Source: Octopus bimaculoides | Lineage: Eukaryota | Direction of reading: 5' to 3' | DNA: 64,000 nt | Assembly (NCBI RefSeq): GCF_001194135.2 | Contig: NC_068985.1 | Location: forward strand, 17,734,224 to 17,798,223 | Shown here: positions 5,970-60,399 of the stretch, piece after piece | How positions within the stretch are numbered: the first letter of the stretch is position 1 | How the letters are laid out: the number at the start of each line of letters is the position of its first letter | Made by a program: the position numbers and the translations under genes | Notes under the pieces: model-generated | The model's database searches: none | Seen by the model: only the letters and a program-made list of their open reading frames with translations | Told to the model about the DNA's origin: nothing

Positions 5970-6195
5970 GGTGGCGAGCTGGCAGAAACGTTAGTGCGCC
6001 GGGCGAAATGCTTAGCGGTATTTCGTCTGCCGTTGCGTTCTGAGTTCAAATTCCACCGAGGTCGACCTTGCCTTTCATCCTTTCAGGGTCGATAAATAAA
6101 GTACCAGTTACGCACTGGGGTTGATGTAATCAACTTAATCCCTTCGTCTGTCCTTGTTTGTCCACTATGTTTAGCTCCTTGTGGGCAATAAAGAT
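5970..6195 (+). mobile_element. SINE family B, full-length
   Basis: ggtggcgagctggcagaaacgttag...gagttcaaattcc (B-box-like)...gtgggcaataaag. Confidence 0.9.
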
Positions 6196-9049: not shown

Positions 9050-10190
9050 AGGTGGGGGTGGGTTTTGAGCCAAGTTAACACTATTGATTGAGACTATATG
9101 ATAATATATTGGATAATGAACACTTGCTCATATACAGTTGCTATTTCTCTGAAAAACTATCAAACATATACAGAAATTCTGCACTGCAAACTCTCAAAGG
9201 GAAATTAATAACTTGAATGTATCAACTAAGTACACCAAGTGAAAAACTAGCTTTGTTTGATGTTGTGAACTTGTAACAGAATCAAAGTAATCAAATACTT
9301 GATAGATTCTTTTACTTAGGAATTACCAGATTGTATTGATAAAAAAATTAAGATAGATCATCTTTAATTTATTTTAGAAAACATTTATTTCATGTATGTA
9401 ATGTAACTGCTTTCTGTTAAATATCAGGCACAGCAACGGGAACCAAAGTTTTAGCAACTTATGCTAACCTAGTTTGTGGAAATCATGAATTAAAAAGTTT
9501 CTTAATCCTTACAAATATTTAGAAATAGCTTCAGTAGTTAATTGAAAGAGAAATAGGAAATATTTCAGGACAACTGTTTTATTTTATAAAGGGAAAATGT
9601 TGATGAGTTGAATGAATTTAGAAACCTCATACACTGTATACACTCCCCACATCCAATTTACTATGGAATAGAATAACAACAAACTCTTTTTAAGATATAT
9701 TGACGATAAAAGAAATAAGAAATTTGAAACTTGTATACACTTGAAGCCTAGAAACTCAAGACAATACCTATTTATTTGGTCCAACATTATAGCAAAATGA
9801 ATTTGCACAATTGTTTTCAATCCTTTACCAACAATAGAAGCAAAGGAAATATTTACTAATAGAAAATGTCAATTGAATTTAATTGATAATAGAATTCAAA
9901 GTGTGAAACATTGATATTCAAGGAACAAAAATCAAATGTGAAAAAAAAAAGTTAAACCATATGTCTCAACATCTTAACCCAAACATCAGAATCTTTGAAA
10001 ACTTTCATAAAAAATTATTTGCATGAGATTAAGAGATGAAAAAAGATAATGGAAAGATATCTGTTAAAAGTAGAAGACAAATTTTGAAAAAATAGATAGT
10101 GATAAGCAAGAAACCAGACACAAAATCTAAAGGTTGCAAATGCAATTGATCAAACTGTAGAATATCTAACTGTATATTAAAAGGTTCTGG
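9050..10190 (+). mobile_element. Decayed Penelope-like element (PLE) reverse transcriptase region
   Basis: LALFDVVNL (9248), ISGTATGTKVLATYANLVCG (9421), D-N-C-F-I remnant of the YIDD region, HIQFTME, LFLDILTIK; many stops and frameshifts. Confidence 0.8.
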
Positions 10191-12364: not shown

Positions 12365-12575
12365 TTTCAGTACCGCCTGACTGGCCCTCGTGCCGGTGGC
12401 ACGTAAAAGCACCCACTACACTCTCGGAGTGGTTGACGTTAGGAAGGGCATCCAGCTGTAGAAACTCTGCCAGATAAGACTGGAGCTTGGTGCAGCCTGC
12501 TGGCTTGCCAGTCCTCAGTCAAATCGTCCAACCCATGCTAGCATGGAAAGCAGACATTAAACGATGATGATGATA
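12365..12575 (+). mobile_element. SINE family C, 5'-truncated
   Basis: cagtaccgcctgactggccc...gcagacattaaacgatgatgatg. Confidence 0.85.
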
Positions 12576-12656
12576 TATTATATACATACATATACACACA
12601 CACACACACAAGAGTGGACAAATGAAAGAAGGACACAACACATTTATTGGGAGTTA

Positions 12657-16958: not shown

Positions 16959-17123
16959 GGAGTGGCTGTCTGGTAAGTAGCTTGCTTACGAACTACATGG
17001 TTCCGGGTTCAGTCCCACTGCGTGGCACCTTGGGCAAGTGTCTTCTACTATAGCCTCAGGCCGGCCAAAGTCTTGTGAGTGGATTTGGTAGATGGAAACT
17101 TAAAGAAGCCCGTCGCATATATG

Positions 17124-17154
<31 letters not shown>

Positions 17155-17395
17155 ATATGTTTGTGTGTCTGTGTTTGTCCCACATCACTTGACAACCGAT
17201 GCCTGACAACCGATGCTTGACAACCAATGCTGGTGTGTTTAAGTCCCCGTAACTTAGCGGTTCCGCAAAAGAGACCGATAGAATAAGTACTAGGCTTACA
17301 AAGAATAAGTCCTGGGGTCGACTTGCTCGACTAAAGGTGGTGCTCCAGCATGGCCACAGTCAAATGACTGAAACAAGTAAAAGAGTAAAAGAGAG
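16959..17395 (+). mobile_element. SINE family A, young full-length copy in (TA)n
   Basis: ggagtggctgtctggtaagtag head, gggttcagtccc B-box-like, triplicated gacaaccgatgc at 17191-17232, (AGTAAAAG)n tail. Confidence 0.92.
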
Positions 17396-17689
17396 AGTAT
17401 ATATATATGTTAGTATTCAGTCAATTCGAGGATGTCATTCTCATAAGAGATTAATATGTTAAAAAATTTCACTGGTTTAATCCACAACTCTTTTGAGGGA
17501 AGTCTTGACGATATGTATGGGATTATTATAAGTATTATTCAATAAAAGTTGAGAAAATGGAAAGCTGGTAAAGATGTAAATTAATCTATTAACATAGTTC
17601 CAAGGTAAAAACTGATTACAAATAAAAAAAATAAAAAAAACCTGTCAAAAACAATATATTGTGTGTATATATACATATACACACATTGC

Positions 17690-18930: not shown

Positions 18931-20194
18931 GTTTTCACAAGAACACAAATTACATACAACAAAGTAAGGTTATACTGAGGTCAAGTTAGTATATCTTGAA
19001 AATGAATTCAAGTTTTAAAAAATTTGCATTTGCATGAAATTCATGAAGAGTATTTATCAATTTTACATTTGGCAAAGAGTATTTCCAAGCTCTTGAACAT
19101 ACAAAGACTAGATGGTCAATTGTTTCTAGTATAGGATTTTGATCTGGATAAAATGTTCCATTTTAGATTATAAGATAAATTTATATTTTTTCAGTTCCCA
19201 GATGAAGCAAAATAATGAGATATCATTACTTTGATTTCGGTTTCTAAAAGTAAGGGCATGTTCGTTAAAGTAGTATTTAAAAGGACCGAAAGGGAGACTA
19301 ATATATGTGCTGAAGGAATTGTTAGTTTGCACAGTAGATTTGTAAACAATGTCACTATTTATGCTTTTGGAATCAAAGAGTCAAGCATTGAGGTTTTGCG
19401 TTAAAAATATTCTATGATATTTTTGCTGTAGAAGTAAGTTTTCTCCAAGAAATTTAGAGAAAGATTTAACTACAGGGGTTACAAATGCAAAGTTGTATGG
19501 AGGATTATATAGAGAAATGTTTCTTTTTCTCAAAAGAGGTTTTGATTTGTATTGACATACTGTCTTGCAATCTGGAATATATATAAACTGAACTTCTAGT
19601 CACAGAACAGTGAATTCCCTATTTCCAATTTCTACCTATCATCTAACTTCTGTTCTAACTACCAAATACTGGTTCTTGCTCTCACCGTTCTTCCGACCTT
19701 TCCAAATCCATTTCTTATCTTTTATGCCTCTATCTACTGTATCATTCCACAGATCTGGTCTGTGACTCACAATGGGGTCTTGTAGCAACTCCCAGTTGAG
19801 CTTGTGCAATATCAACTAGTATTTCTTTGAGCTAACACCTTGCTGAAGGATCTTTTAGGTCTTATATCTTCCTTCATGAAACTGAGTTGTCTCTGATTCT
19901 GTCTAGCTCTCAGCCTGTTCACTAGTCTTTATTAAATGGTATATTGTTCACTGATGAAGAACACAAAATCCACAACCATTGCCTATCCCATTTTTGGTAT
20001 ATAAACTAGTAATCTACATACATATGTACATATTATTGGTATGACACCATTCTGTATTACACAATGTTATTCTAAAATAATGCTTTAATTAGAAATTACT
20101 GTTACTTCTTACTAAGTAAAACGAATCTTTGCACACAAATATTTTCTACATTATTTACATTTGACGGATATTTGACCTCATCTTGTTTGTTGTT

Positions 20195-20240
20195 AACACA
20201 ACTTTTCAGCTGATATACTCTCCAGCCTTCATCAGGTGTC
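20195..20240 (-). ncRNA. Type-I minimal hammerhead motif
   Basis: GACAC-CTGATGA-A-GGCTG-gagagtatat-CAGCT-GAAAA-GTT/GTGTT. Confidence 0.7.
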
Positions 20241-20441
20241 TTGGGGAAATTTTGAACCTGGGTTCTCATTCCTAAGGTATTTTTCTATGTTATTATTATT
20301 ATTCAGGTCACTGCTTGGAATCGAACTCGAAATCTTGGGGTTAGTACCCTGCGCTCTTAAACACTACGCCATATGCCCGTGCTACTAACCCCAAGATTCC
20401 GAGTTTGATTCCAAGCAGTGACTTGAATAATAATAATAATA

Positions 20442-20487
20442 GACACCTGATGAAGGTTGGAGGGTATATCAACCGAAACATTGTGTT
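20442..20487 (+). ncRNA. Type-I minimal hammerhead motif
   Basis: GACAC-CTGATGA-A-GGTTG-gagggtatat-CAACC-GAAAC-ATT/GTGTT. Confidence 0.75.
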
Positions 20488-21099
20488 AACAACAAACAAG
20501 ATGAGGACAATTGTTCATCAAATATAAATATTGTACATAATTCCTCATCTCTTAAATATAGAATTGAAATATTTTTCTACCTGATATATTGATTTTCAGG
20601 CTGTTTTTTTAATACATGCTCATATATTATACACACACACACAAACATATAACAGTTTTCACTAAAAACTGAAGTATTATGCTGTTTGTTTATCTCTTTG
20701 TATATCTTAGCGAGTTCAATTCAAGATTTTATTTGCTAGTATATCAGGTATCACATCCTTTGTATAATTTCCTCTAAACATGATCAGTGGTTTTTCAAAA
20801 CAAATATCATAAAATTTAACCCACCTCAGTTTCATACAATGACTACTCAAATTTCCTACAGAGCCAGTTTTTTATGTTCACACGTTCTTTGAAATTACAC
20901 TACAGTGGTGTAGTATAGTGTGCAGACCACACAGGATAGTAATTTTATATGTAATTTTTGCTGTAGTGTAAGGTATATTAAGGGGGCAACCATTTTGGAT
21001 ACAGTGCAGGGTGGCCAAAACCCACACAACACCACTTGATCAAGTAAATGATTTAATAGAACTAAACACCATTGTAAAATTGCTTAAACCTTATCTTTA

Positions 21100-23345: not shown

Positions 23346-23943
23346 TTCTAATGTGGGCTACACATGTACATAGCAGTAGGTAAGCAGCTGTACAATATTG
23401 AAGTATTTTATGGCTCCAAAGGGGGAGTGCAGTCTCTGAGATATGGTTTGGCTGCGGTTTCCTTTATTTATATGTCAACATGAGAAGTCATTGGAAGTAT
23501 GAAAAAGATTGAGATACTCATGCAGAACAAAACAAGAGTCATTGGGGATGTAAGTTATCTAGATATCTGGTAAAAATTTCAATAGAGTGAATCAGTTGAT
23601 ACTACTTGACCTAACAATTAATGATCTAAAGGAAATTTGCCTGTTATTTCTAATTACCTTATTAAGCTTCCTGATTGGTTCAATGATTACATGGTAGAAT
23701 ACAGTGATAAGTAATTTTGCACTTGAACGATTATGCTTAACACTAATTAAACTTTACTCATACCCAATAGTAATTATTTGAATTATTTCCTATCTGTAAC
23801 TTGTTACCATAATTTTGCTGCAATACAATCTTTGTTCCAATTAATTTTAAAGAGTAAGAAAACAGACATTGTTAATTTGGTGTTTGGATCATAAATTAAA
23901 ATATTTAGTTCAGTATAATCATTTCTTCTAGATTAGTAATACT

Positions 23944-24312
23944 CTTTTACTTGTTTCAGTAATTTGACTGCGGCCATGCTGGAGCACCGCCTTTAGTCGA
24001 GCAAATCAACCCCAGGACTTATTCTTTGTAAGCCTAGTACTTATTCTATTGTTCTCTTTTGCCGAACCGCTAAGTTACGATCACATCGGTTGTCAAGCGA
24101 TGCTGGGGGGACAAACACTCACACATATATATATATATATATATATACATATATATGATGGGCTTCTTTCAGTTTCCGTCTACCAAATCCACTCACAAGG
24201 CTTTGGTTGGTCCAAGGCTATAGTAGAAGACACTTGCCCAAGGTGCCACACAGTGGTACTGAACCCAGAACCATATGGTTCGTAAGCAAGCTACTTACCA
24301 CACAGCCACTCC
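23944..24312 (-). mobile_element. SINE family A, full-length
   Basis: Both ends present, CpGs largely retained. Confidence 0.9.
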
Positions 24313-24371
24313 TACGCCTAATAGTTAATACATGTGGAAAGAAATTACACAAAATGTATTTATTACAATAG

Positions 24372-25209: not shown

Positions 25210-26150
25210 ATACTCTTTTCTCTTTTACTTGTTTCAGTCATTTGACTGCGGCCATGCTGGAGCACCGCCTTTAGTCGAGGAAATCGACCCCAGGACTTAT
25301 TCTTTGTAAGCCTAGTACTTATTCTATCGGTCTCTTTTTGCCGAACTGCTAAGTTACGGGGACGTAAACACACCAGCATCGGTTGTCAAGCGATGGTGGG
25401 GGGACAAACACACATACATATATATATATATACATATATACNNNNNNNNNNNNNNNNNNNNNNNNNNNNNNNNNNNNNNNNNNNNNNNNNNNNNNNNNNN
25501 NNNNNNNNNNNNNNNNNNNNNNNNNNNNNNNNNNNNNNNNNNNNNNNNNNNNNNNNNNNNNNNNNNNNNNNNNNNNNNNNNNNNNNNNNNNNNNNNNNNN
25601 NNNNNNNNNNNNNNNNNNNNNNNNNNNNNNNNNNNNNNNNNNNNNNNNNNNNNNNNNNNNNNNNNNNNNNNNNNNNNNNNNNNNNNNNNNNNNNNNNNNN
25701 NNNNNNNNNNNNNNNNNNNNNNNNNNNNNNNNNNNNNNNNNNNNNNNNNNNNNNNNNNNNNNNNNNNNNNNNNNNNNNNNNNNNNNNNNNNNNNNNNNNN
25801 NNNNNNNNNNNNNNNNNNNNNNNNNNNNNNNNNNNNNNNNNNNNNNNNNNNNNNNNNNNNNNNNNNNNNNNNNNNNNNNNNNNNNNNNNNNNNNNNNNNN
25901 NNNNNNNNNNNNNNNNNNNNNNNNNNNNNNNNNNNNNNNNNNNNNNNNNNNNNNNNNNNNNNNNNNNNNNNNNNNNNNNNNNNNNNNNNNNNNNNNNNNN
26001 NNNNNNNNNNNNNNNNNNNNNNNNNNNNNNNNNNNNNNNNNNNNNNNNNNNNNNNNNNNNNNNAGGGTTATACTAGAAGACACTTGCCCAAAGTGCAGTA
26101 CAGTGGGATTGAACCTGAGACATGGTTGGGAAGCTAGCTTTTTCACCACC
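25210..26150 (-). mobile_element. SINE family A spanning an assembly gap
   Basis: 3' half at 25210-25441, 5' part at 26064-26150. Confidence 0.8.
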
Positions 26151-29677: not shown

Positions 29678-30075
29678 TCATCATCATCGTTTAACGTCTG
29701 CTTTCCATGCTAGCATGGGTTGGGCGATTTGACTGAGGACTGGTGAAACCAGATGGCTACACCAGGCTCCAATCTGATTTGGCAGAGTTTCTACAGCTGG
29801 ATGCCCTTCCTAATGCTAACCATTCTGAGAGTGTAGTGGGTGCTTTTACATGCCACCGGCACGAAGGCCAGTTAAGCGATACTGGCAACGGCCACGCTCA
29901 AAATGGTGTATTTTACGTGCCACCTGCACAGGAGCCAGTCCAGAGGCACTGGCAACCATCTCGCTCGAATGTCTTTTCACGTGCCAGGAAGGCGACGCTG
30001 GTAATGATCATGCTCAAATGGTGCTATTTACGTGCCACTGGGATCATCTTTATTTTCATGTCCACTTTTTCATGC
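29678..30075 (-). mobile_element. SINE family C
   Basis: catcatcatcgtttaacgtctgctttccatgc... with internal GGCAC repeats. Confidence 0.88.
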
Positions 30076-38550: not shown

Positions 38551-40339
38551 CCAAAAGAAAGTAGTATGGCATAGCTACAACACTATTACAATATACATGT
38601 ACGTTACCGATCACAAAAAGTAATTACGAATGTACTGTGATAGTAACGAGAAAGATATTAAAGAATTATAAAACAAATCGTAAAAATATTTTTTTTACCG
38701 TACAAATGGAGCCATCCTAAAGTAAGTCACATGCCGGTGTAAACAGAACTAAGTCCTGACATCATTTTATTTCCGTGCGTAATGATTGACTCATTTCAAT
38801 AGCGAATGAAGTAATCAACTACAATACAAAAGTTATCTCATCGCGAGAACTTTTTCGGGGATGGTGGTGGATTGGTTGAATCGTTAGAGTGTCGCTATCT
38901 ATGATATATGTTCTGGCGCTTAACATTCTGCGTTCAAATCTTACAAAGGCTAATTTTATCATTTATCCCTTCGGGGCCGATAAAATAGATACCAGTCAAG
39001 TAATGATGTCGATTTAATCGAGTAACACCCTCCTCTTAAAATTTCAGATTTTATTCCCATGTTAGAAATTATATTTTAGCTGAATCATGGAACAGACAGA
39101 GAAATAATTAATGGTTTTCATATCAATACANNNNNNNNNNNNNNNNNNNNNNNNNNNNNNNNNNNNNNNNNNNNNNNNNNNNNNNNNNNNNNNNNNNNNN
39201 NNNNNNNNNNNNNNNNNNNNNNNNNNNNNNNNNNNNNNNNNNNNNNNNNNNNNNNNNNNNNNNNNNNNNNNNNNNNNNNNNNNNNNNNNNNNNNNNNNNN
39301 NNNNNNNNNNNNNNNNNNNNNNNNNNNNNNNNNNNNNNNNNNNNNNNNNNNNNNNNNNNNNNNNNNNNNNNNNNNNNNNNNNNNNNNNNNNNNNNNNNNN
39401 NNNNNNNNNNNNNNNNNNNNNNNNNNNNNNNNNNNNNNNNNNNNNNNNNNNNNNNNNNNNNNNNNNNNNNNNNNNNNNNNNNNNNNNNNNNNNNNNNNNN
39501 NNNNNNNNNNNNNNNNNNNNNNNNNNNNNNNNNNNNNNNNNNNNNNNNNNNNNNNNNNNNNNNNNNNNNNNNNNNNNNNNNNNNNNNNNNNNNNNNNNNN
39601 NNNNNNNNNNNNNNNNNNNNNNNNNNNNNNNNNNNNNNNNNNNNNNNNNNNNNNNNNNNNNNNNNNNNNNNNNNNNNNNNNNNNNNNNNNNNNNNNNNNN
39701 NNNNNNNNNNNNNNNNNNNNNNNNNNNNNNNNNNNNNNNNNNNNNNNNNNNNNNNNNNNNNNNNNNNNNNNNNNNNNNNNNNNNNNNNNNNNNNNNNNNN
39801 NNNNNNNNGGGAGAGAGAAGGGGGGCGGGAGAGAGAAGGGGGAAGGAGAGAGACAAAGTGCGTGTGACTATTAGAATGTGCACATGCGTGTACTGTGTTG
39901 CAGTAATCAAGAGTTTTAATATTGATGCGACGGCAGTGTGCTCCAATCAATAAACCACTTCACTTGTCGGATCCTACATATGGTTTGGCGGGGATTTGGG
40001 CCCTAATGTTCTCTGCTACTGACCAGGGTCTATAAGAAGAAGATTCTGCCGTTACATCGGTTTGGAGTTTAGAGAACCTAGGTGAGGATTATGACTAAAT
40101 ATCATAGTCCCCTCAAATTTTGAAAGCACCCACATCCCGTGACCCAAAATCAGCCTCGTTTTGGTTTACCAAATTTCTCTTGGAAGGCTTGCTAATCATT
40201 GCATGCTGGTAATCAATAAAATCGACTCCACTACTTGGCTGGTACTTTATTTTATGGAGTTAACGGCAAAGTTGACATCGCAGGATTTGCAATAAGAATA
40301 TAAAAAACCAGAACAAACACCGCAAATGACCCGCCTATT

Positions 40340-43910: not shown

Positions 43911-44290
43911 CACCGTCGTCGTTGGCACTCCGTCGCTTACGACGTCGAGGGTTCCAGTTGATCCGATCAACGGAACAGTCTGCTCGTGAAATTAACTGAG
44001 CACTCCACAGACACGTGTACCATTAACGTAGTTCTCGGGGATATTCAGCGTGACACAGTGTGACAAGGCCGACCCTTTGAATTACAGGCACAACAGAAAC
44101 AGGAAGTAAGAGTGAGAGAAAGTTGTGGTGGAAGAGTACAGCAGGGTTCGCCACCATCCCCTGCCGGAGCCTCGTGGAGCTTTAGGTGTTTTCGCTCAAT
44201 AAACACTCACAACGCCCGGTCTGGGAATCGAAACCGCGATCCTATGACCGCGAGTCCGCTGCCCTAACCACTGGGCCATTGCGCCTCCAC
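43911..44290 (-). mobile_element. SINE family D (OR1/OR2-like tRNA head), young full-length copy
   Basis: Head gtggaggcgcaatggcccagtggttagggcagcggactcgcgg...ggtttcgattccc; 11-bp TSD ACATCGACTAT (43900-43910) / ACATCAACTAT (44291-44301). Confidence 0.9.
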
Positions 44291-45954: not shown

Positions 45955-46560
45955 CAGTACCGTGCAAAAGTCTTCGGCCACATTAAGCTACAGTAAATTT
46001 CTACTAATTACCAACTTTCACATTACTGTACATTGCTAATATTTCGTGTGGCTTCCCATAGCTTGGATAATTGTTTCAATGCACCTAGGAAGAGATGCGT
46101 ACAAATCCTTCGTCTTCACAAGTATGAGATGCCATCGTCTGTGACTGAGCTCCCGCAACTCTTCAAGATTGTGCGGATTCTTCGGACGAACACTTCTCTT
46201 TAGTTCTGTCCACATTTGCTCGATGATATTTGAGTCAGCGCTCTGAGCTGTCCAATCTTTCAATACGGTAACACGTCCATCAGCTAGACTGTTGTGTTGC
46301 ATGCGATCTGTGGCATGGAGCTCCATCATGCTGAAAAATCTCACCTTCATCCAAGTCTGGTATCAAATTGTCCTTCAGCAACTAGATGTATTTGGCACTA
46401 TTCAAGTTACCGTCAATTTTAATCAACTTTCTCGAACCATCACTTTTTATGTATTCCTAAAGCATCAGACTCATACACCCAAACTTCACTGTTTTCGTTG
46501 TGTAATGTGGGTCGTTTCGCTTTCTTGGAGGCCTTCTCACAAATTCTCGTACCCTATGTG
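45955..46560 (-). mobile_element. Tc1 (DD34E-type) 3' half with TIR
   Basis: TA|CAGTACCGTGCAAAAGT terminus; IFQHDGAPC; W.AQS.DSNIIEQMW.ELKR; SLPRCIETII.AMGSHTKY. Confidence 0.88.
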
Positions 46561-46561
46561 G

Positions 46562-47545
<984 letters not shown>

Positions 47546-47574
47546 ATACATACATATATACATACATACATATA

Positions 47575-48040
47575 TTGGGTTGGCAACTAAGTTCCCGCTG
47601 TTTTTTCAAGTTTTGGAATCTATTTTTTTCGAGAATTCTATTTTTGAATCATTTTGGAATCTATATTTTTTCTAGTTAATTTTAGTTAATTTTTGTTTAT
47701 TTTCAGATCATTAAAATGGAATGTCAAGTTAAGAAAGGCGAGTATTTTCGACACCTCCTTTTTGCTGCACGACAACGACCGCTCTCATATCACTAATATG
47801 ACCAAGGAAGCCATTCAAACACATGGCTGGGAAGTGCTGTCACACTCGCTGTACTCTCCTGATTTGGCACCAACGGATTTCCACCTTTTTCTATCTCTTT
47901 CAAATGTTATGCGCGGAGCTTCGTCCAATGCTGATGCAGAATTGAGAGCTTGGTTGGATCAATTTTGCGGGTCGAAATCGGGTGATTTCTACCAACGAGG
48001 TATTGAAAATCCTGTTGAATGTTGGGAAGAAGTTGTAAAC
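47575..48040 (+). mobile_element. Mariner (DD34D) with a large internal deletion
   Basis: TA|TTGGGTTGGCAACTAAG TIR; MECQVKKGEYFRHLLF (ATG 47716) joined to LHDN.RSH...WEVL.H..YSPDLAPTDFHLF...WEEVVN. Confidence 0.88.
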
Positions 48041-48790
48041 ATCTCCATAAGTTCGGTCTTGTGAGCAGATGCTGCCGAGAAGCTTCTCGTGAATTGACCA
48101 ATAATCAGGCTCAACAACAAATGAACATCTTGAAACTACTGGCAAATCCTCAAGATGCTCGTTTTTGGTGTCGAATTATAACCGAGGATGAAAAAAATCC
48201 TAATAAGAGAAATCAGCGGCTTCGTTCAGGCCAGGCTTCAAAAGCTTATGTCAAATGAGGATGGTTTGAACAGAAGGTCATTTTGAGTGTATGGTGGAAC
48301 TTCGATGGCTATGATGTGAACACTAACCTTTATGTTCAACGACTGCAGCAAATATATGATGCTTTGAAAGTTCGCAACCCGGCATTGGTCAATCGAACAC
48401 GTGCACTCACGCAGCATGACAATGTTCCAACAGACACTGCGAATATGATCGAACACAAGCTTGAAGGGCTGAAAGTGCTGCCCTACCCTGCCTACAATCC
48501 AAACCTTGTACCATCGGTTTATTACCTTTTCCGAGCCATGGCTCATTTCCTGCAGGGAGGAATGTTCAACAATGTGGATGAGGTTGAAAACGAATGCAGG
48601 AAGTTTTTTTTTTGCCTCCAAACAAGCTAAATGGTATAAAAGTAGAATTGAATTGATGGCACCACGATGGCTACAGACAATAGTATATGAAGGGATATAT
48701 TTTGATGAATAAACGCTTTTCGTGTTTAGTTTGTTTGAACTGTTAATTAAGTTTGAAATAGGAAGAAAAAACTTTTGACTCAATCAGATA
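48041..48790 (+). mobile_element. Second, different mariner (5'-truncated) with 3' TIR
   Basis: LHKFG..S; RIITEDEK; VWWNF; QHDNVP; PAYNPNLVPS.YYLFR; WLQTI.YEG.YFDE; TIR-like acttttgactcaatcaga|ta. Confidence 0.85.
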
Positions 48791-54411: not shown

Positions 54412-56259
54412 GCTTTGTGCAAGGCCTTTTCTCACTTTAAAAAGTTCCAGGCACAAGCATCACTTAATTCTTAACACCTCTTATGTGTTTCTTACTATAG
54501 CTGACCGTAACTGAAAAACAAAGCACTGAATGAAAATTTCCACGAGAGAATGGAGGCATGTGCCAGCATAGGTGGAATCTGTCTGAAAACCTGCTACAAG
54601 AAGTATCAATCGTTGCTACATCCGTGCAAAAGACCGCAGGACAAAGAAGATCCTTGTTATTTTAAGAGAACAATCAAACGATGATATGGCTCTAATTCAA
54701 GTTGCAGTCATCATGAATATGTATGTATGTATGGATGGATGGATAGTTCTGGTAGGCACTGGAAAAAGCTTTGCTTTGCATCACTGAAAAGGTCAAATAA
54801 TACCAAAACATATCCAGAGTTGCTTCTCCGCGGACAAAGATCAAATTAAATTAATGTTAGTCTTCCACCTTAAATTTATTTCTTTATTTCCAGCGTGCGA
54901 AATTCAAATTTTAATTAATTTAGATTTATGAGTTGCTGCCTTTTTACCTGCAAAAGTAATTTTAATTGAGTTGTTTTTTCTCTTTGCTCTCTACATTAAA
55001 TGTATTAGCACTAATTCAACTATTTTATTTTATGCGGATGGTGTCCTTAGGCAATAGCTCCTCGGTAACATCTTTCCTTAGATCTTCAACTTCTGATGGC
55101 GCTGTCGTGACATGTATATTTTGGGGCACTTTTAATACCTGACACTCATTCTTGATGCGAAATTGTGTAGTTTATTTTTCTTACAGGCGCTGGCATGTGT
55201 TCAAACCCTTGCCAGGTTTGAACACAACTGGTTTCTTCCATCACCAGCGGGGAGATGAATAGCAGCTATTTCTAGTGGTCGAGCGTCTATCATTGACAAG
55301 ACCAAGGAAGGTCGAAATCACGTGATCTGGTGGTCTTGGTGCTGGGGATGGCGGAGATTTATCTCCTTGCTAGTGATATAAATAAGAGAGCATTTTGCAC
55401 CAAAAGCCAATACGAGAGTTTCCCCTCATGGTAACTACCACAGTATAGTTTATCCCAACAGAACATCCATGTTTAAGTGGGGATAAATATTACCTGTCGG
55501 TAATAAAGTAACAACTCAACTTGTACTTTACTTATCATCCCCGAAATAATGAAAGGCATAGTTGATTGGGTGGGATTTGACTCCAGAGCGCTAACGACTC
55601 TGATAACTCATCGCTTGAGAACCAGTAAAGCGGGGTTCACATGATTTTGTTGCTAAGGTACATGTACAATAAATTAGTTGTACTTCTGCCGCAGACAAAA
55701 TATCTTAACTTTTTTAAAAATACAATTCCTAATATTTAATTATAAAAGTATAACGGATTTTTTTTAAAAAATCGAGTGGTTATGGGGGGGGGGACCAGTA
55801 GAGCAAAAGATAAATCAAAAGGGTCCACAGGGAATAAATGGTTGAGAACCACTGGCTTAAACAAACGAATGAAAGCTTTTTGACACATTCTCATTCTCTG
55901 CGAGCGTGTTTGGTTATCATAGGGAAGGAAGGAGTGTTCATACGTTACTACAATGTGTAATTCATTGCATATTAATATATTCGAAGGGAGGAGAAAAGGT
56001 TAACTTGATTTTCGGCCACATATGTTACAGACTACTCTATATAAATAAATGCTAGTGTGTTAATAATGAGCGGGTAGATAAATAGAGAGATAGACAGCAC
56101 TGATTAAGTCGGCTCGGTAAAAATATCTTTTGGGAGCTGTGGGTTAGATAAAGGGGTGGTAGCTGTATTTTTGATGAGCTCGCGTTTAAAAGAGGCTGTA
56201 TTGTTTTAGATTAGAGATTCATGTGCGTGCGTGTGTGATATTGAAGGTGTGAAGGCAAG

Positions 56260-56550
56260 TTGCTTAGTGGTTAGGGTACTCAGCTCAAGATCGTAAAGTC
56301 ATGAGTTCGATTCCCGTCAGCGCGTTCCGTCCTTGAGCAAGACACTATTTCACGTTGCACCAGTTCACTTAGCTGGCAAAAATGAATTGTACCTGTATTT
56401 CGAAGGGCCAGCCTCATCACATTGTCACACTGAATCTCCCTTACAACTATGTTAAGAGTACAGCGCAGTGCTCAGTCATTTGCACGTTAATTCTACGAGC
56501 AGTTGATTGGATCAACTGAAACTACGTCTTCGTAACCGACGGAGTGCCGG
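56260..56550 (+). mobile_element. SINE family D variant (different middle, same 3' part as 43911-44290)
   Basis: gtgaaggc..tagtggttaggg head, gagttcgattccc B-box, gtccttgagcaagacact core, gtaaccgacggagtgcc tail. Confidence 0.82.
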
Positions 56551-56934: not shown

Positions 56935-57742
56935 ATTCTAGTTTGCAAATTTGAAGATGCTGGGAACCATGCATGCNNNNNNNNNNNNNNNNNNNNNNNN
57001 NNNNNNNNNNNNNNNNNNNNNNNNNNNNNNNNNNNNNNNNNNNNNNNNNNNNNNNNNNNNNNNNNNNNNNNNNNNNNNNNNNNNNNNNNNNNNNNNNNNN
57101 NNNNNNNNNNNNNNNNNNNNNNNNNNNNNNNNNNNNNNNNNNNNNNNNNNNNNNNNNNNNNNNNNNNNNNNNNNNNNNNNNNNNNNNNNNNNNNNNNNNN
57201 NNNNNNNNNNNNNNNNNNNNNNNNNNNNNNNNNNNNNNNNNNNNNNNNNNNNNNNNNNNNNNNNNNNNNNNNNNNNNNNNNNNNNNNNNNNNNNNNNNNN
57301 NNNNNNNNNNNNNNNNNNNNNNNNNNNNNNNNNNNNNNNNNNNNNNNNNNNNNNNNNNNNNNNNNNNNNNNNNNNNNNNNNNNNNNNNNNNNNNNNNNNN
57401 NNNNNNNNNNNNNNNNNNNNNNNNNNNNNNNNNNNNNNNNNNNNNNNNNNNNNNNNNNNNNNNNNNNNNNNNNNNNNNNNNNNNNNNNNNNNNNNNNNNN
57501 NNNNNNNNNNNNNNNNNNNNNNNNNNNNNNNNNNNNNNNNNNNNNNNNNNNNNNNNNNNNNNNNNNNNNNNNNNNNNNNNNNNNNNNNNNNNNNNNNNNN
57601 NNNNNNNNNNNNNNNNNNNNNNNNNNNNNNNNNNNNNNNNNNNNNNNNNNNNNNNNNNNNNNNNNNNNNNNNNNNNNNNNNNNNNNNNNNNNNNNNNNNN
57701 NNNNNNNNNNNNNNNNNNNNNNNNNNNNNNNNNNNNNNNNNN

Positions 57743-58567: not shown

Positions 58568-59511
58568 AGGGCTTTCCTATAAGTAGGTTATCTCCCTTGG
58601 CTAGGCGGCGCTCCATGTAGATAAACTTCTGGAGGCTACCCACGCCATTGTTATTGTTTTACGTCTTATCATGGATATAAAGCAGCTTGATGATTCAGCT
58701 ATCGAAGTACTTACTGTGCCTGAGTTAAAGAAATATTTAAGATTATATGGACAGTATGTTACTGGAAGAAAGGCGGACNNNNNNNNNNNNNNNNNNNNNN
58801 NNNNNNNNNNNNNNNNNNNNNNNNNNNNNNNNNNNNNNNNNNNNNNNNNNNNNNNNNNNNNNNNNNNNNNNNNNNNNNNNNNNNNNNNNNNNNNNNNNNN
58901 NNNNNNNNNNNNNNNNNNNNNNNNNNNNNNNNNNNNNNNNNNNNNNNNNNNNNNNNNNNNNNNNNNNNNNNNNNNNNNNNNNNNNNNNNNNNNNNNNNNN
59001 NNNNNNNNNNNNNNNNNNNNNNNNNNNNNNNNNNNNNNNNNNNNNNNNNNNNNNNNNNNNNNNNNNNNNNNNNNNNNNNNNNNNNNNNNNNNNNNNNNNN
59101 NNNNNNNNNNNNNNNNNNNNNNNNNNNNNNNNNNNNNNNNNNNNNNNNNNNNNNNNNNNGTAAGTTGCCGAATTTCACAGATAATGACATAATTACCTCG
59201 TGCTACGGATGAAAGCAAAGCAACAGTTAAGGAGTGGCATATTTTACCACGACAGACACGTACACAGCATCGAATACCACGATGTGAGTGAAAGCTGCTC
59301 TCACTGTATTGTCCGGTGTCTGGTAATCCCTTCGATACTGACATCAAACCAAAAAAAGAATCCTGACCACAGAGTGTGGGTAATTATATCAAATGTCACT
59401 GGCAATGTGCATTCAGCTGATTGCAACTGTTAAAGCAAGTCACTGAGCATGCGTACATGTCATACGGGAGAGTTCCAATCAGGGGTGGATAGCACCTTAT
59501 AGGAAAGCCCT
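58568..59511 (+). mobile_element. Non-autonomous TIR DNA transposon carrying SAP and SWIM coding remnants (ISL2EU-like)
   Basis: Perfect IR ATATAGGGCTTTCCTATAAG (58564-58583 / 59496-59515); AT or TA TSD; LTVPELKKYLRLYGQYVTGRKAD (SAP); RVWVIIS..TGNVHSADCNC (SWIM start). Confidence 0.8.
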
Positions 59512-60052: not shown

Positions 60053-60399
60053 NNNNNNNNNNNNNNNNNNNNNNNNNNNNNNNNNNNNNNNNNNNNNNNN
60101 NNNNNNNNNNNNNNNNNNNNNNNNNNNNNNNNNNNNNNNNNNNNNNNNNNNNNNNNNNNNNNNNNNNNNNNNNNNNNNNNNNNNNNNNNNNNNNNNNNNN
60201 NNNNNNNNNNNNNNNNNNNNNNNNNNNNNNNNNNNNNNNNNNNNNNNNNNNNNNNNNNNNNNNNNNNNNNNNNNNNNNNNNNNNNNNNNNNNNNNNNNNN
60301 NNNNNNNNNNNNNNNNNNNNNNNNNNNNNNNNNNNNNNNNNNNNNNNNNNNNNNNNNNNNNNNNNNNNNNNNNNNNNNNNNTTTTCAAAAATTTAAAAT

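Follow-up and report, generated by a model that had tools for sequence, protein, structure and literature searches.

Does a tRNA-type promoter head lying beside a hammerhead ribozyme motif in octopus DNA form a single transposable element with it, and how did a second, inverted copy come to adjoin the first? The question is raised by positions 20118-20576 of a 64-kb stretch of the Octopus bimaculoides genome (NCBI RefSeq assembly GCF_001194135.2, contig NC_068985.1, positions 17,734,224 to 17,798,223, forward strand), referred to below as the window. In a first-pass annotation made from the letters of the window, the locus was read as an inverted dimer of a self-cleaving element combining the head of a short interspersed nuclear element (SINE) with a Penelope-type ribozyme. 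Animal hammerhead repeats, including retrozymes and the minimal hammerheads of Penelope-like elements (PLEs), are very numerous, and both their transcription and the role of their ribozymes are at issue. The reading that we consider probable is that the locus is an old insertion of an octopus family of non-autonomous, SINE-like elements, probably transcribed by RNA polymerase III (Pol III) and mobilised by PLEs, and that its head-to-head pair of copies was produced by double priming.

Read on the minus strand from 20382 to 20141, the locus holds, in this order, a tRNA-type head, a (TAA)n microsatellite, a 48-nt block, a 46-nt hammerhead motif and a tail (Table 1). The features listed in the first-pass annotation, i.e. 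the head, the (TAA)n, the hammerhead and the position of the first run of four thymines (T4), were all present when both strands were read. No minus-strand T4 run occurs before 20121-20118, so that a read-through transcript of ~262 nt is possible, matching the length of ~260 nt first proposed. Across the family, the whole unit measures ~300 bp, with a head of ~75 nt, a block of 48 nt, a hammerhead of 46 nt and a tail of ~55-80 nt. The hammerhead of this unit reads GACAC-CUGAUGA-A-GGCUGG...UCAGCU-GAAA-AG-UU↓GUGUU (arrow, predicted cut), where GACAC/GUGUU forms helix I, CUGAUGA is followed by an extra A, GGCUGG/UCAGCU forms helix II and helix III, after GAAA, is reduced to A-AG-U. The predicted cut lies after GUU, between 20200 and 20199, and the tail holds the hairpin GUUGU-GUUA-ACAAC immediately 3' of it.

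Head to head with this unit, on the plus strand from 20383 to 20566, lies a partner copy without A box and without the 48-nt block. The plus arm had been described as a repeat of the unit with its A box deleted; the alignment confirmed this and placed the start of the partner at head position ~37. The block was deleted in the partner at an AGA/ATAGA microhomology. The right hammerhead has GGUUGG/UCAACC as helix II and A-CA-U as helix III, with a predicted cut between 20482 and 20483. The arms of the inverted repeat surround a 36-nt centre and are 85% (20141-20241/20441-20541) and 95% (20290-20346/20383-20439) complementary, with ~7% substitutions private to each arm. BLAST revealed no further copy of the element inside the window. 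The pair is bracketed by a direct repeat whose two copies match at 13/14 nt with one indel; an equally good match was seen in 1.1% of random flank pairs, before demanding that it lie at the element boundary. As the inner part of this repeat resembles the 3' end of the element, which is expected if priming used microhomology, we call it a probable 13-nt target-site duplication (TSD).

Table 1. Features of the inverted pair and its flanks, in window coordinates.
Feature	Position	Strand	Basis or remark
Head of full-length unit, tRNA-derived	20306-20382	-	A/B boxes; head profile
A box (A-box-like), TGGCGTAGTGT	20371-20361	-	Box scan
B box, AGTTCGATTCC	20327-20317	-	44 nt downstream of A box, the tRNA spacing
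(TAA)n microsatellite, internal, between head and body	20289-20305	-	Direct reading; alignment
48-nt block, AUAGAAAAAUACCUUAGGAAUGAGAACCCAGGUUCAAAAUUUCCCCAA	20241-20288	-	Family feature; no counterpart in right arm
First minimal type-I hammerhead motif, 46 nt	20195-20240	-	Descriptor, fold, alignment
Tail of full-length unit, GUGUUAACAACAAACAAGAUGAGG...AAUGUAGAAAAU	20141-20194	-	Aligns with right arm and O. sinensis copy
First T4 run past full-length unit, in flanking DNA	20118-20121	-	Possible Pol III stop of this copy
Partner head, 5'-truncated, from head position ~37; B-box half AGTTTGATTCC	20383-20423	+	Inverted repeat; head profile
(AAT)n of partner, fused straight to hammerhead	20424-20441	+	Alignment; direct reading
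Second minimal hammerhead motif	20442-20487	+	Descriptor, fold, alignment
Tail of partner copy	20488-20541	+	Alignment
25-nt 3' terminal segment TCCTCATCTCTTAAATATAGAATTG, right end only	20542-20566	+	Common to relatives
Left copy of probable TSD, AAATATTTTCTAC	20137-20149		Local alignment
Right copy of probable TSD, AAATATTTTTCTAC	20567-20580		Local alignment

Relatives of the element were sought with peptides from its six-frame translation. The first search led to O. sinensis LOC115224785; an exonised copy of the element makes up its predicted N-terminus, MRTQVRNFPKTPEEGWRVYQPKRCVNNKHDEDNYPS. The surrounding O. sinensis locus (CM016884.1; L002) has many repeats in common with the window (80-90% identity), and a second O. 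bimaculoides locus (L004) shares some, up to 98.8% identical; these repeats by themselves point to an octopus, probably O. bimaculoides or a near relative, as the source of the window. A full unit was found at L002 9766-10160. Its head has a perfect A box (TGGCGTAGTGG) and is followed by a long microsatellite, the 48-nt block known from the window, the hammerhead, the tail and the 25-nt 3' segment. Its hammerhead, GACAC-CUGAAGA-A-GGCUGG...UCAGCC-GAAA-CG-UU↓GUGUU, has a perfect helix II and the palindrome ACGU as helix III. A second copy in the same locus (5986-6101), again with GAAACGUU, is 5'-truncated and headless, and O. vulgaris has both copies at orthologous positions. An exhaustive HMMER search with the window open reading frame (ORF) 20284-20105 returned 27 ORF clusters (Logan, ENA, NCBI) in two groups, namely short ORFs starting from an ATG inside the 48-nt block (Logan contigs, O. 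bimaculoides A0A0L8FV75 and O. bimaculoides 'dystrobrevin beta X1') and ORFs of tandem repeats. A Logan contig (SRR11869385; L005) carries a decayed copy with an inverted tail arm, the head start GGGCATATGGCG, microsatellite, block, mutated hammerhead and tail. On the minus strand of an ENA assembly contig (ERZ21867824; L007), a head (TGGCGTAACGG ... GGTTCAATTCT) alignable with the octopus head precedes body, hammerhead (ACAC-CUGAAGA-A-AGCCGG...UCGGCC-GAAA-CG-UU↓GUGG) and tail, while the plus strand, head to head with this headed unit, carries 2.7 tandem 129-nt monomers with the same hammerhead. As L007 contains no other octopus repeat, we assign it to another taxon. The 48-nt block, which encodes the MRTQV... 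start of many called ORFs, is present in both L002 copies and in L005, and the 25-nt 3' segment recurs at L002 10131-10155, in the inverted arm of L005 and in ORFs P0065 and P0080. The element is thus known from one locus in the window, two in L002 and one each in L005 and L007, all independent, with a candidate 13-nt TSD at the window locus alone. Exact-pattern DNA scans of metagenome, viral and prokaryotic-genome collections were empty, as expected for octopus DNA. Six-frame peptides of abundant octopus SINEs led to five O. bimaculoides proteins; the locus of one of them, L004, was without a copy of the element.

The head was searched for as an A box and a B box 30-60 nt apart, neither with more than one mismatch. 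Pairs of such boxes at tRNA spacing (43-44 nt) are expected 0 times per random window; the window holds three, all with a spacing of 44 nt, one belonging to this element and the others to SINE heads at 44278(-) and 56260(+). When a profile of the head was applied to ~155 kb of non-redundant octopus DNA (window, L002, L004), strong matches occurred only beside the body, whereas other SINE heads matched weakly and generically; in the same sample, the body without a head was seen only as a truncated copy. These results bear on the suggestion that a short tRNA-derived SINE ending in (TAA)n came to lie by chance beside a fragment of a PLE pseudo-long terminal repeat (pseudo-LTR), with the palindrome arising from a later duplication at the DNA level. 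Relatives of PLEs do prefer microsatellite targets (PMC8557442), the headless body at L002 5986-6101 adjoins long microsatellites, and the microsatellite that separates head from body is not of constant length, being longer and more complex in L002 and L005 than in the window. However, the junction of head, microsatellite and block (..AAC/AT[CA]GAAAAATA) is identical in the window and L002, the head start also lies upstream of the body in L005, a homologous head precedes a homologous hammerhead in L007, i.e. in another taxon, and the head was never found alone in the octopus sample. A chance juxtaposition is on these grounds very unlikely, and the sequence comparisons support head and hammerhead body as one multi-copy, non-coding element. 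Independent occurrence of the two parts, which the first-pass annotation had named as fatal to its proposal, is answered in this way for the composite unit, in a small sample.

The hammerhead was searched for with a descriptor of our own for minimal motifs. It called for a helix I of 4 bp or longer, then CUGANGA and, optionally, one further base, a helix II likewise of 4 bp or longer, GAAA, 0-8 loop nucleotides, UH and the closing strand of helix I. It matched exactly two sites in the 64 kb, 20240-20195 and 20442-20487, against 0.015 expected per random window. The core, CUGANGA ... GAAA ... UH in type-I order, was kept in both arms and in all relatives. An alignment of 46 columns was made from both window arms, the L002 copy and three L007 sequences, i.e. 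six sequences representing two taxa; 19 columns varied, but none of the 12 core positions did (P=4.5e-4), and within CUGANGA only N7 varied. The extra A between A9 and G10.1 was present in 6/6 sequences, and G10.1-C11.1 is G:C in the right arm, L002 and the L007 monomer and G:U in the left arm. Helix II had been said to co-vary between the arms, and it does: GGCUG/CAGCU in one corresponds to GGUUG/CAACC in the other, pairing being kept through one compensatory pair and one GU/GC change. Helices I and II are 100% paired in the three octopus sequences, with 1 compensatory pair, and helix II is 94% paired in all six, with two pairs changed on both sides (C:G to U:A and U:A to C:G). A further 38 ORF-encoded instances, a set selected by similarity, were read from their amino acids. 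The K codon (A13 A14 A15.1) was retained in 37/38; D/E alternation reflects variation of N7 only; and the loop-3 codon, read as R, C or H, corresponds to CGU or to products of its CpG decay. Helix II is represented in these ORFs by the codon pairs W-Q, R-R and Q-C, with W-R and R-W as wobble intermediates, which fit covariation.

Minimal hammerheads of PLEs are marked by a base between A9 and G10.1, the G10.1-C11.1 pair, a short helix I and a palindromic helix III (PMC4209133). Since traits of this kind are present beyond what the descriptor demands, we count the octopus hammerhead as of PLE type. The Penelope-type ribozyme originally claimed thus held for the extra A, the 5-bp helix I, G10.1-C11.1 and the opposite-strand pair, while the palindromic helix III was found in relatives only. 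The palindrome ACGU, present in L002 (both copies) and L007, is a feature of the family that has been lost in the window copy, where AAGU (left) and ACAU (right) leave 1 bp and a 2-nt loop. As neither window hammerhead has the palindrome, this copy is most likely a dead relic, and judged from these changes both of its ribozymes are probably inactive.

Several observations weigh against the reading of the locus as a Pol III-transcribed, PLE-mobilised element with a PLE-type ribozyme. The relatives were recruited by similarity to the window region, which biases conservation upward. Covariation within the octopus sequences alone (three independent sequences) was not significant, nor were shuffle controls for covariation, the sequences being few and related. 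No Rfam hammerhead match was obtained at E<=10 for the window copy, the O. sinensis copy or L007, and at the gathering threshold Rfam likewise gave no hammerhead and no tRNA; in our judgement this miss is not decisive, as the models do not describe minimal motifs without helix III. Folded in isolation, the 56-nt RNA forms helices I and II around an open core, and the fold z-scores of the motif are unremarkable, but with 10 more nucleotides the minimum-energy fold favours a competing hairpin over helix I. Minimal PLE hammerheads are, moreover, poor cleavers in vitro (PMC4209133). Regarding the head, ARAGORN found no tRNA and Rfam gave no tRNA match at E<=10 (window, O. sinensis copy, L007); a D-arm can be drawn by hand and the anticodon arm is degenerate. 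With no tRNA seen by either program, the head is a SINE-type promoter module and not a tRNA gene. In the O. sinensis copy, T4 runs precede the ribozyme, which means that some copies make poor templates for Pol III. The probable TSD overlaps element-like sequence, its left copy sharing the last 9 nt of the left tail as microhomology, and the same local-alignment test gave no convincing TSD around the L002 copy. Finally, no autonomous PLE with the same hammerhead and tail was found, and the window contains no PLE ORF, ten long ORFs having been scanned without a match to reverse transcriptase (RT) or GIY-YIG. PLEs are, at the same time, among the abundant repeat families of octopus (PMC8967140).

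The Rfam result, the z-scores and the competing hairpin would also suit an ordinary SINE dependent on a long interspersed nuclear element (LINE), in which the hammerhead-like motif would be fortuitous, with no role at the RNA level, and the pair a mere rearrangement. Octopus genomes are full of LINE-dependent tRNA SINEs (PMC8967140), and by extrapolation the 46-nt descriptor would give several hundred chance matches in a genome of a few Gb. Such an origin nevertheless leaves the invariant core amid 19 variable columns, the compensatory and wobble-intermediate changes in helix II and the PLE-type extras outside the descriptor (G10.1-C11.1 and the ACGU palindrome) without a cause. Neither a poly(A) nor a LINE-like tail is present, tandem 129-nt monomers are typical of retrozymes, and arms with overlapping content are not made by LINE twin priming. 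We regard an ordinary LINE-dependent SINE as improbable.

The competing hairpin GUUGU-GUUA-ACAAC (20185-20201 on the minus and 20481-20497 on the plus strand) covers both the predicted cut and the 3' strand of helix I, and the same hairpin occurs in L007 (10165-10181) as GUUGU-GGAA-AUAAC. It might act as an alternative fold with a regulatory role or as a binding site for a protein. A long conventional helix III formed by GUUGU/ACAAC was considered and rejected, as no U16.1-H17 follows that hairpin. Other hammerhead-like motifs were also observed. With a relaxed descriptor, window positions 55287-55333 (+) show a U3-A8 core variant (UUGACAA ... GAAA) with the 10-nt palindrome AUCACGUGAU at the site of helix III, resembling the Cercyon-type variant described for PLEs. 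A canonical-looking type-I candidate, CCUAUG-CUGAAGA-...-GAAAC-GUGC-GUC-CAUAGG, with a perfect 6-bp helix I and no Rfam match at E<=1, is common to O. sinensis (L002 24704-24786, +) and O. vulgaris (L003 27172-27254, +).

The second part of the question concerns the pair. At 4/4 headed loci an inverted, 5'-truncated partner abuts the 5' end of the full unit, and ORF P0080 spans a headless pair. Insertions of PLEs characteristically show an inverted 5'-truncated copy, partial tandems and an extension of 30-40 bp at one end only (Craig et al., PMC8557442), and an insertion signature of this type was observed in the window, L002, L005 and L007, with a partial 129-nt tandem in the last. The arms duplicate the same region of the element, unlike products of L1/LINE twin priming. 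They differ in content, with the 48-nt block on the left only and the 25-nt 3' segment on the right only, and by site patterns (13/12/10) neither arm has the other as a closer relative than the O. sinensis copy. Different templates are clearly seen in L007, with a headed unit on one side and headless tandem monomers on the other. For these reasons two primings on two RNAs are favoured.

Instead of using two templates, the pair could have arisen by snap-back of the cDNA at a microhomology in the head, or by copying of a hairpin-headed master. Here a further point must be counted against double priming: the inversion junction is the same, at head position ~37-39, in the window (20346/20347 and 20382/20383) and L002 (9829/9830). 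This shared junction would be explained more simply by inheritance from a hairpin-headed master, and would misfit a start at the internal promoter. Complementarity is, as given above, highest in the head parts of the arms, and the L002 head contains a direct repeat CGCGGGCA (nt 4-11 and 31-38) and, at its 5' end, a palindrome GCCCGCGGGC; these could guide a template switch at the junction. On the other hand, the junctions differ in L005 and L007, and neither the unequal content of the arms, nor their being no more alike than either is to the O. sinensis copy, nor the two templates of L007 agree with a single template. Snap-back of a single cDNA was ranked below double priming because of the arm content, and an origin of the pair from other than two templates is, taken together, unlikely.

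The first-pass annotation had described the pair as an inverted dimer. Dual motifs of PLEs do lie on opposite strands, 100-700 bp apart (PMC4209133). In an inverted pair, however, each strand carries one sense hammerhead, so there is no double hammerhead in cis, and the pair is best read as a by-product of insertion, the inverted truncated partner of a PLE-type integration (PMC8557442), and not as a functional ribozyme dimer. A read-through transcript of the pair would fold into a long duplex. A long inverted repeat with a 36-nt centre could also recall a foldback DNA transposon like a miniature inverted-repeat transposable element (MITE), with terminal inverted repeats of ~200 bp, or a hairpin locus for small RNAs, and long-hairpin microRNA precursors were indeed matched weakly. 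These matches (31 bits against a gathering threshold of 200) are far below threshold and reflect only the hairpin, while strong asymmetry marks the other loci, where the arm measures 60 nt (L002) or the partner is tail-only or tandem (L005 and L007). Together with the 5' truncations, the internal Pol III promoter and a 13-nt TSD untypical of MITEs, this makes a foldback element or small-RNA locus hardly credible.

Returning to double priming, the life cycle that we infer for the family would run as follows. Pol III would start at the head and read through the body, and the hammerhead and tail, as a module common to PLEs and retrozymes, would be used by a PLE RT/GIY-YIG endonuclease for target-primed reverse transcription. 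Since helix III consists only of the palindrome A-CG-U, cleavage would take place only when two sense copies pair, either as two RNAs or as tandem units. During integration, both nicked target strands would prime on two related templates, which would yield a full-length minus copy and an inverted 5'-truncated plus copy, head to head and within one 13-nt TSD.

The window locus itself is a decayed relic that probably has no function of its own; it is ordinary as a locus, and the interest lies at the level of the family. The element is a candidate for the first SINE dependent on PLEs, and it offers a testable transcription unit together with natural headed and headless variants for comparison. 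As a wider and tentative proposal, cephalopods, and possibly other animals, may possess a conserved class of retrozyme-like elements with a tRNA-type Pol III promoter of their own and mobilised by PLEs, i.e. a PLE-dependent SINE class, in which the minimal hammerhead and tail would be a shared module for 3' processing and recognition. If true, this would explain the transcription of at least some animal hammerhead repeats reported as promoterless, and would link Smα-type elements, retrozymes and PLE pseudo-LTRs.

The family also matters for annotation, as its copies supply predicted octopus proteins with start codons, a 36-residue N-terminus and a splice donor. LOC115224785 (L002 10001-10113) starts at the block ATG, runs for 36 codons through hammerhead and tail, and splices at a GTAAGT that arose within the tail. 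The element-derived peptide is also present in O. bimaculoides 'dystrobrevin beta isoform X1' (94 aa) and A0A0L8FV75 (51 aa), and the proteins from exonised copies include P0056, P0057, P0059, P0087 and P0065. These gene models may be annotation artefacts or real first exons derived from transposable elements.

Further observations were made in the window and the related loci. L007 contains a second pair of A-box-like and B-box-like motifs (TATGGCTAACGG ... GTGGATTCAAT; 9809-9925, -) in the body of the headed unit, and its head may be a tandem of two tRNA-like modules. An RT in L007 was considered as PLE partner and rejected, being RTE-like in our reading of its motifs, with a match to Pfam RVT_1. 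Window positions 44221-44290 (-) and 56250-56320 (+) hold ordinary tRNA-derived SINEs with 44 nt between A and B boxes and a conserved central domain. Two SINE families have about eight copies each in the window (e.g. 16959-17399, 23940-24318, 12368-12610 and 29678-29986), and some window SINE copies are up to 98.8% identical to copies in L004, indicating recent SINE activity as well as the species of the window. Tc1/mariner transposase remnants in several frames lie at 46039-48627; an otherwise unrelated animal assembly (L001), which has nothing but the transposon in common with the window, contains a copy ~80% identical to the mariner part. The ORF list of the window includes spurious long ORFs from both strands that stem from runs of N, i.e. 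assembly gaps, at 2066-2504, 25442-26063, 39131-39808, 56977-57742, 58779-59159 and 60053-60381.

In a literature search, no paper linking hammerheads, SINEs and cephalopods was found, and the element was compared with four kinds of known systems. The tRNA-derived SINEs of octopus (tRNA-Core/tRNA-Deu; PMC8967140) resemble it in the layout of the head, with 44 nt between A and B boxes (e.g. 44278(-) and 56260(+) in the window). Body and tail are, in contrast, unrelated to theirs, without a Core- or Deu-type central domain or a LINE-like tail, and the element instead has a hammerhead and an insertion pattern with inverted partners. With the minimal hammerheads of PLEs (PMC4209133) it shares a helix I of 4-5 bp, the unpaired base between A9 and 10.1, the G10.1-C11.1 pair, a palindromic 15.2-16.2 (in the relatives), opposite-strand pairs 100-700 bp apart and an activity expected only as dimers. 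It differs in its helix II of 5-6 bp, compared with the 7-8 bp typical of S. mansoni, and in the placing of the motif, which lies downstream of a tRNA-type head and not in the pseudo-LTR of an element with RT and GIY-YIG; unlike in autonomous PLEs, no ORF with these two domains between pseudo-LTRs is found around it.

Non-LTR retrozymes of metazoans (PMC7229834; 10.64898/2026.07.22.740005) are likewise small, non-coding hammerhead repeats thought to be non-autonomous PLE derivatives, recently argued to derive from PLE pseudo-LTRs, and the head-to-tail 129-nt monomers of L007 (2.7 units), with a hammerhead in each, are of this kind. Retrozymes are, however, defined as tandem arrays, whereas the window copy is an inverted pair with no tandem, and according to reviews they have no promoter, whereas the octopus unit has a putative Pol III promoter of its own.

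A precedent is provided by Smα and Sjα of Schistosoma, SINE-like elements in which a Pol III promoter accompanies a hammerhead (Ferbeyre et al. 1998; Laha et al. 2000; reviewed in PMC6765202). The view of the first-pass annotation that this combination is not a described SINE type was therefore too strong. Compared by description, the schistosome and octopus elements are alike as short non-coding units of ~0.3 kb that unite a tRNA-type Pol III promoter with a type-I hammerhead and occur both dispersed and in repeats. The hammerhead of Smα is canonical and fast, with loop-loop contacts and a real helix III, whereas the octopus motif is of the minimal PLE type, with an extra nucleotide after A9, an open helix I without loop 1 and a helix III of ACGU only. 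The hosts, too, are a flatworm and a mollusc, and the octopus copies show a PLE-like inverted partner. A Pol III promoter joined to a hammerhead in a SINE-like unit is thus already known from schistosomes, and the octopus element is a variant of this arrangement with a PLE-type ribozyme.

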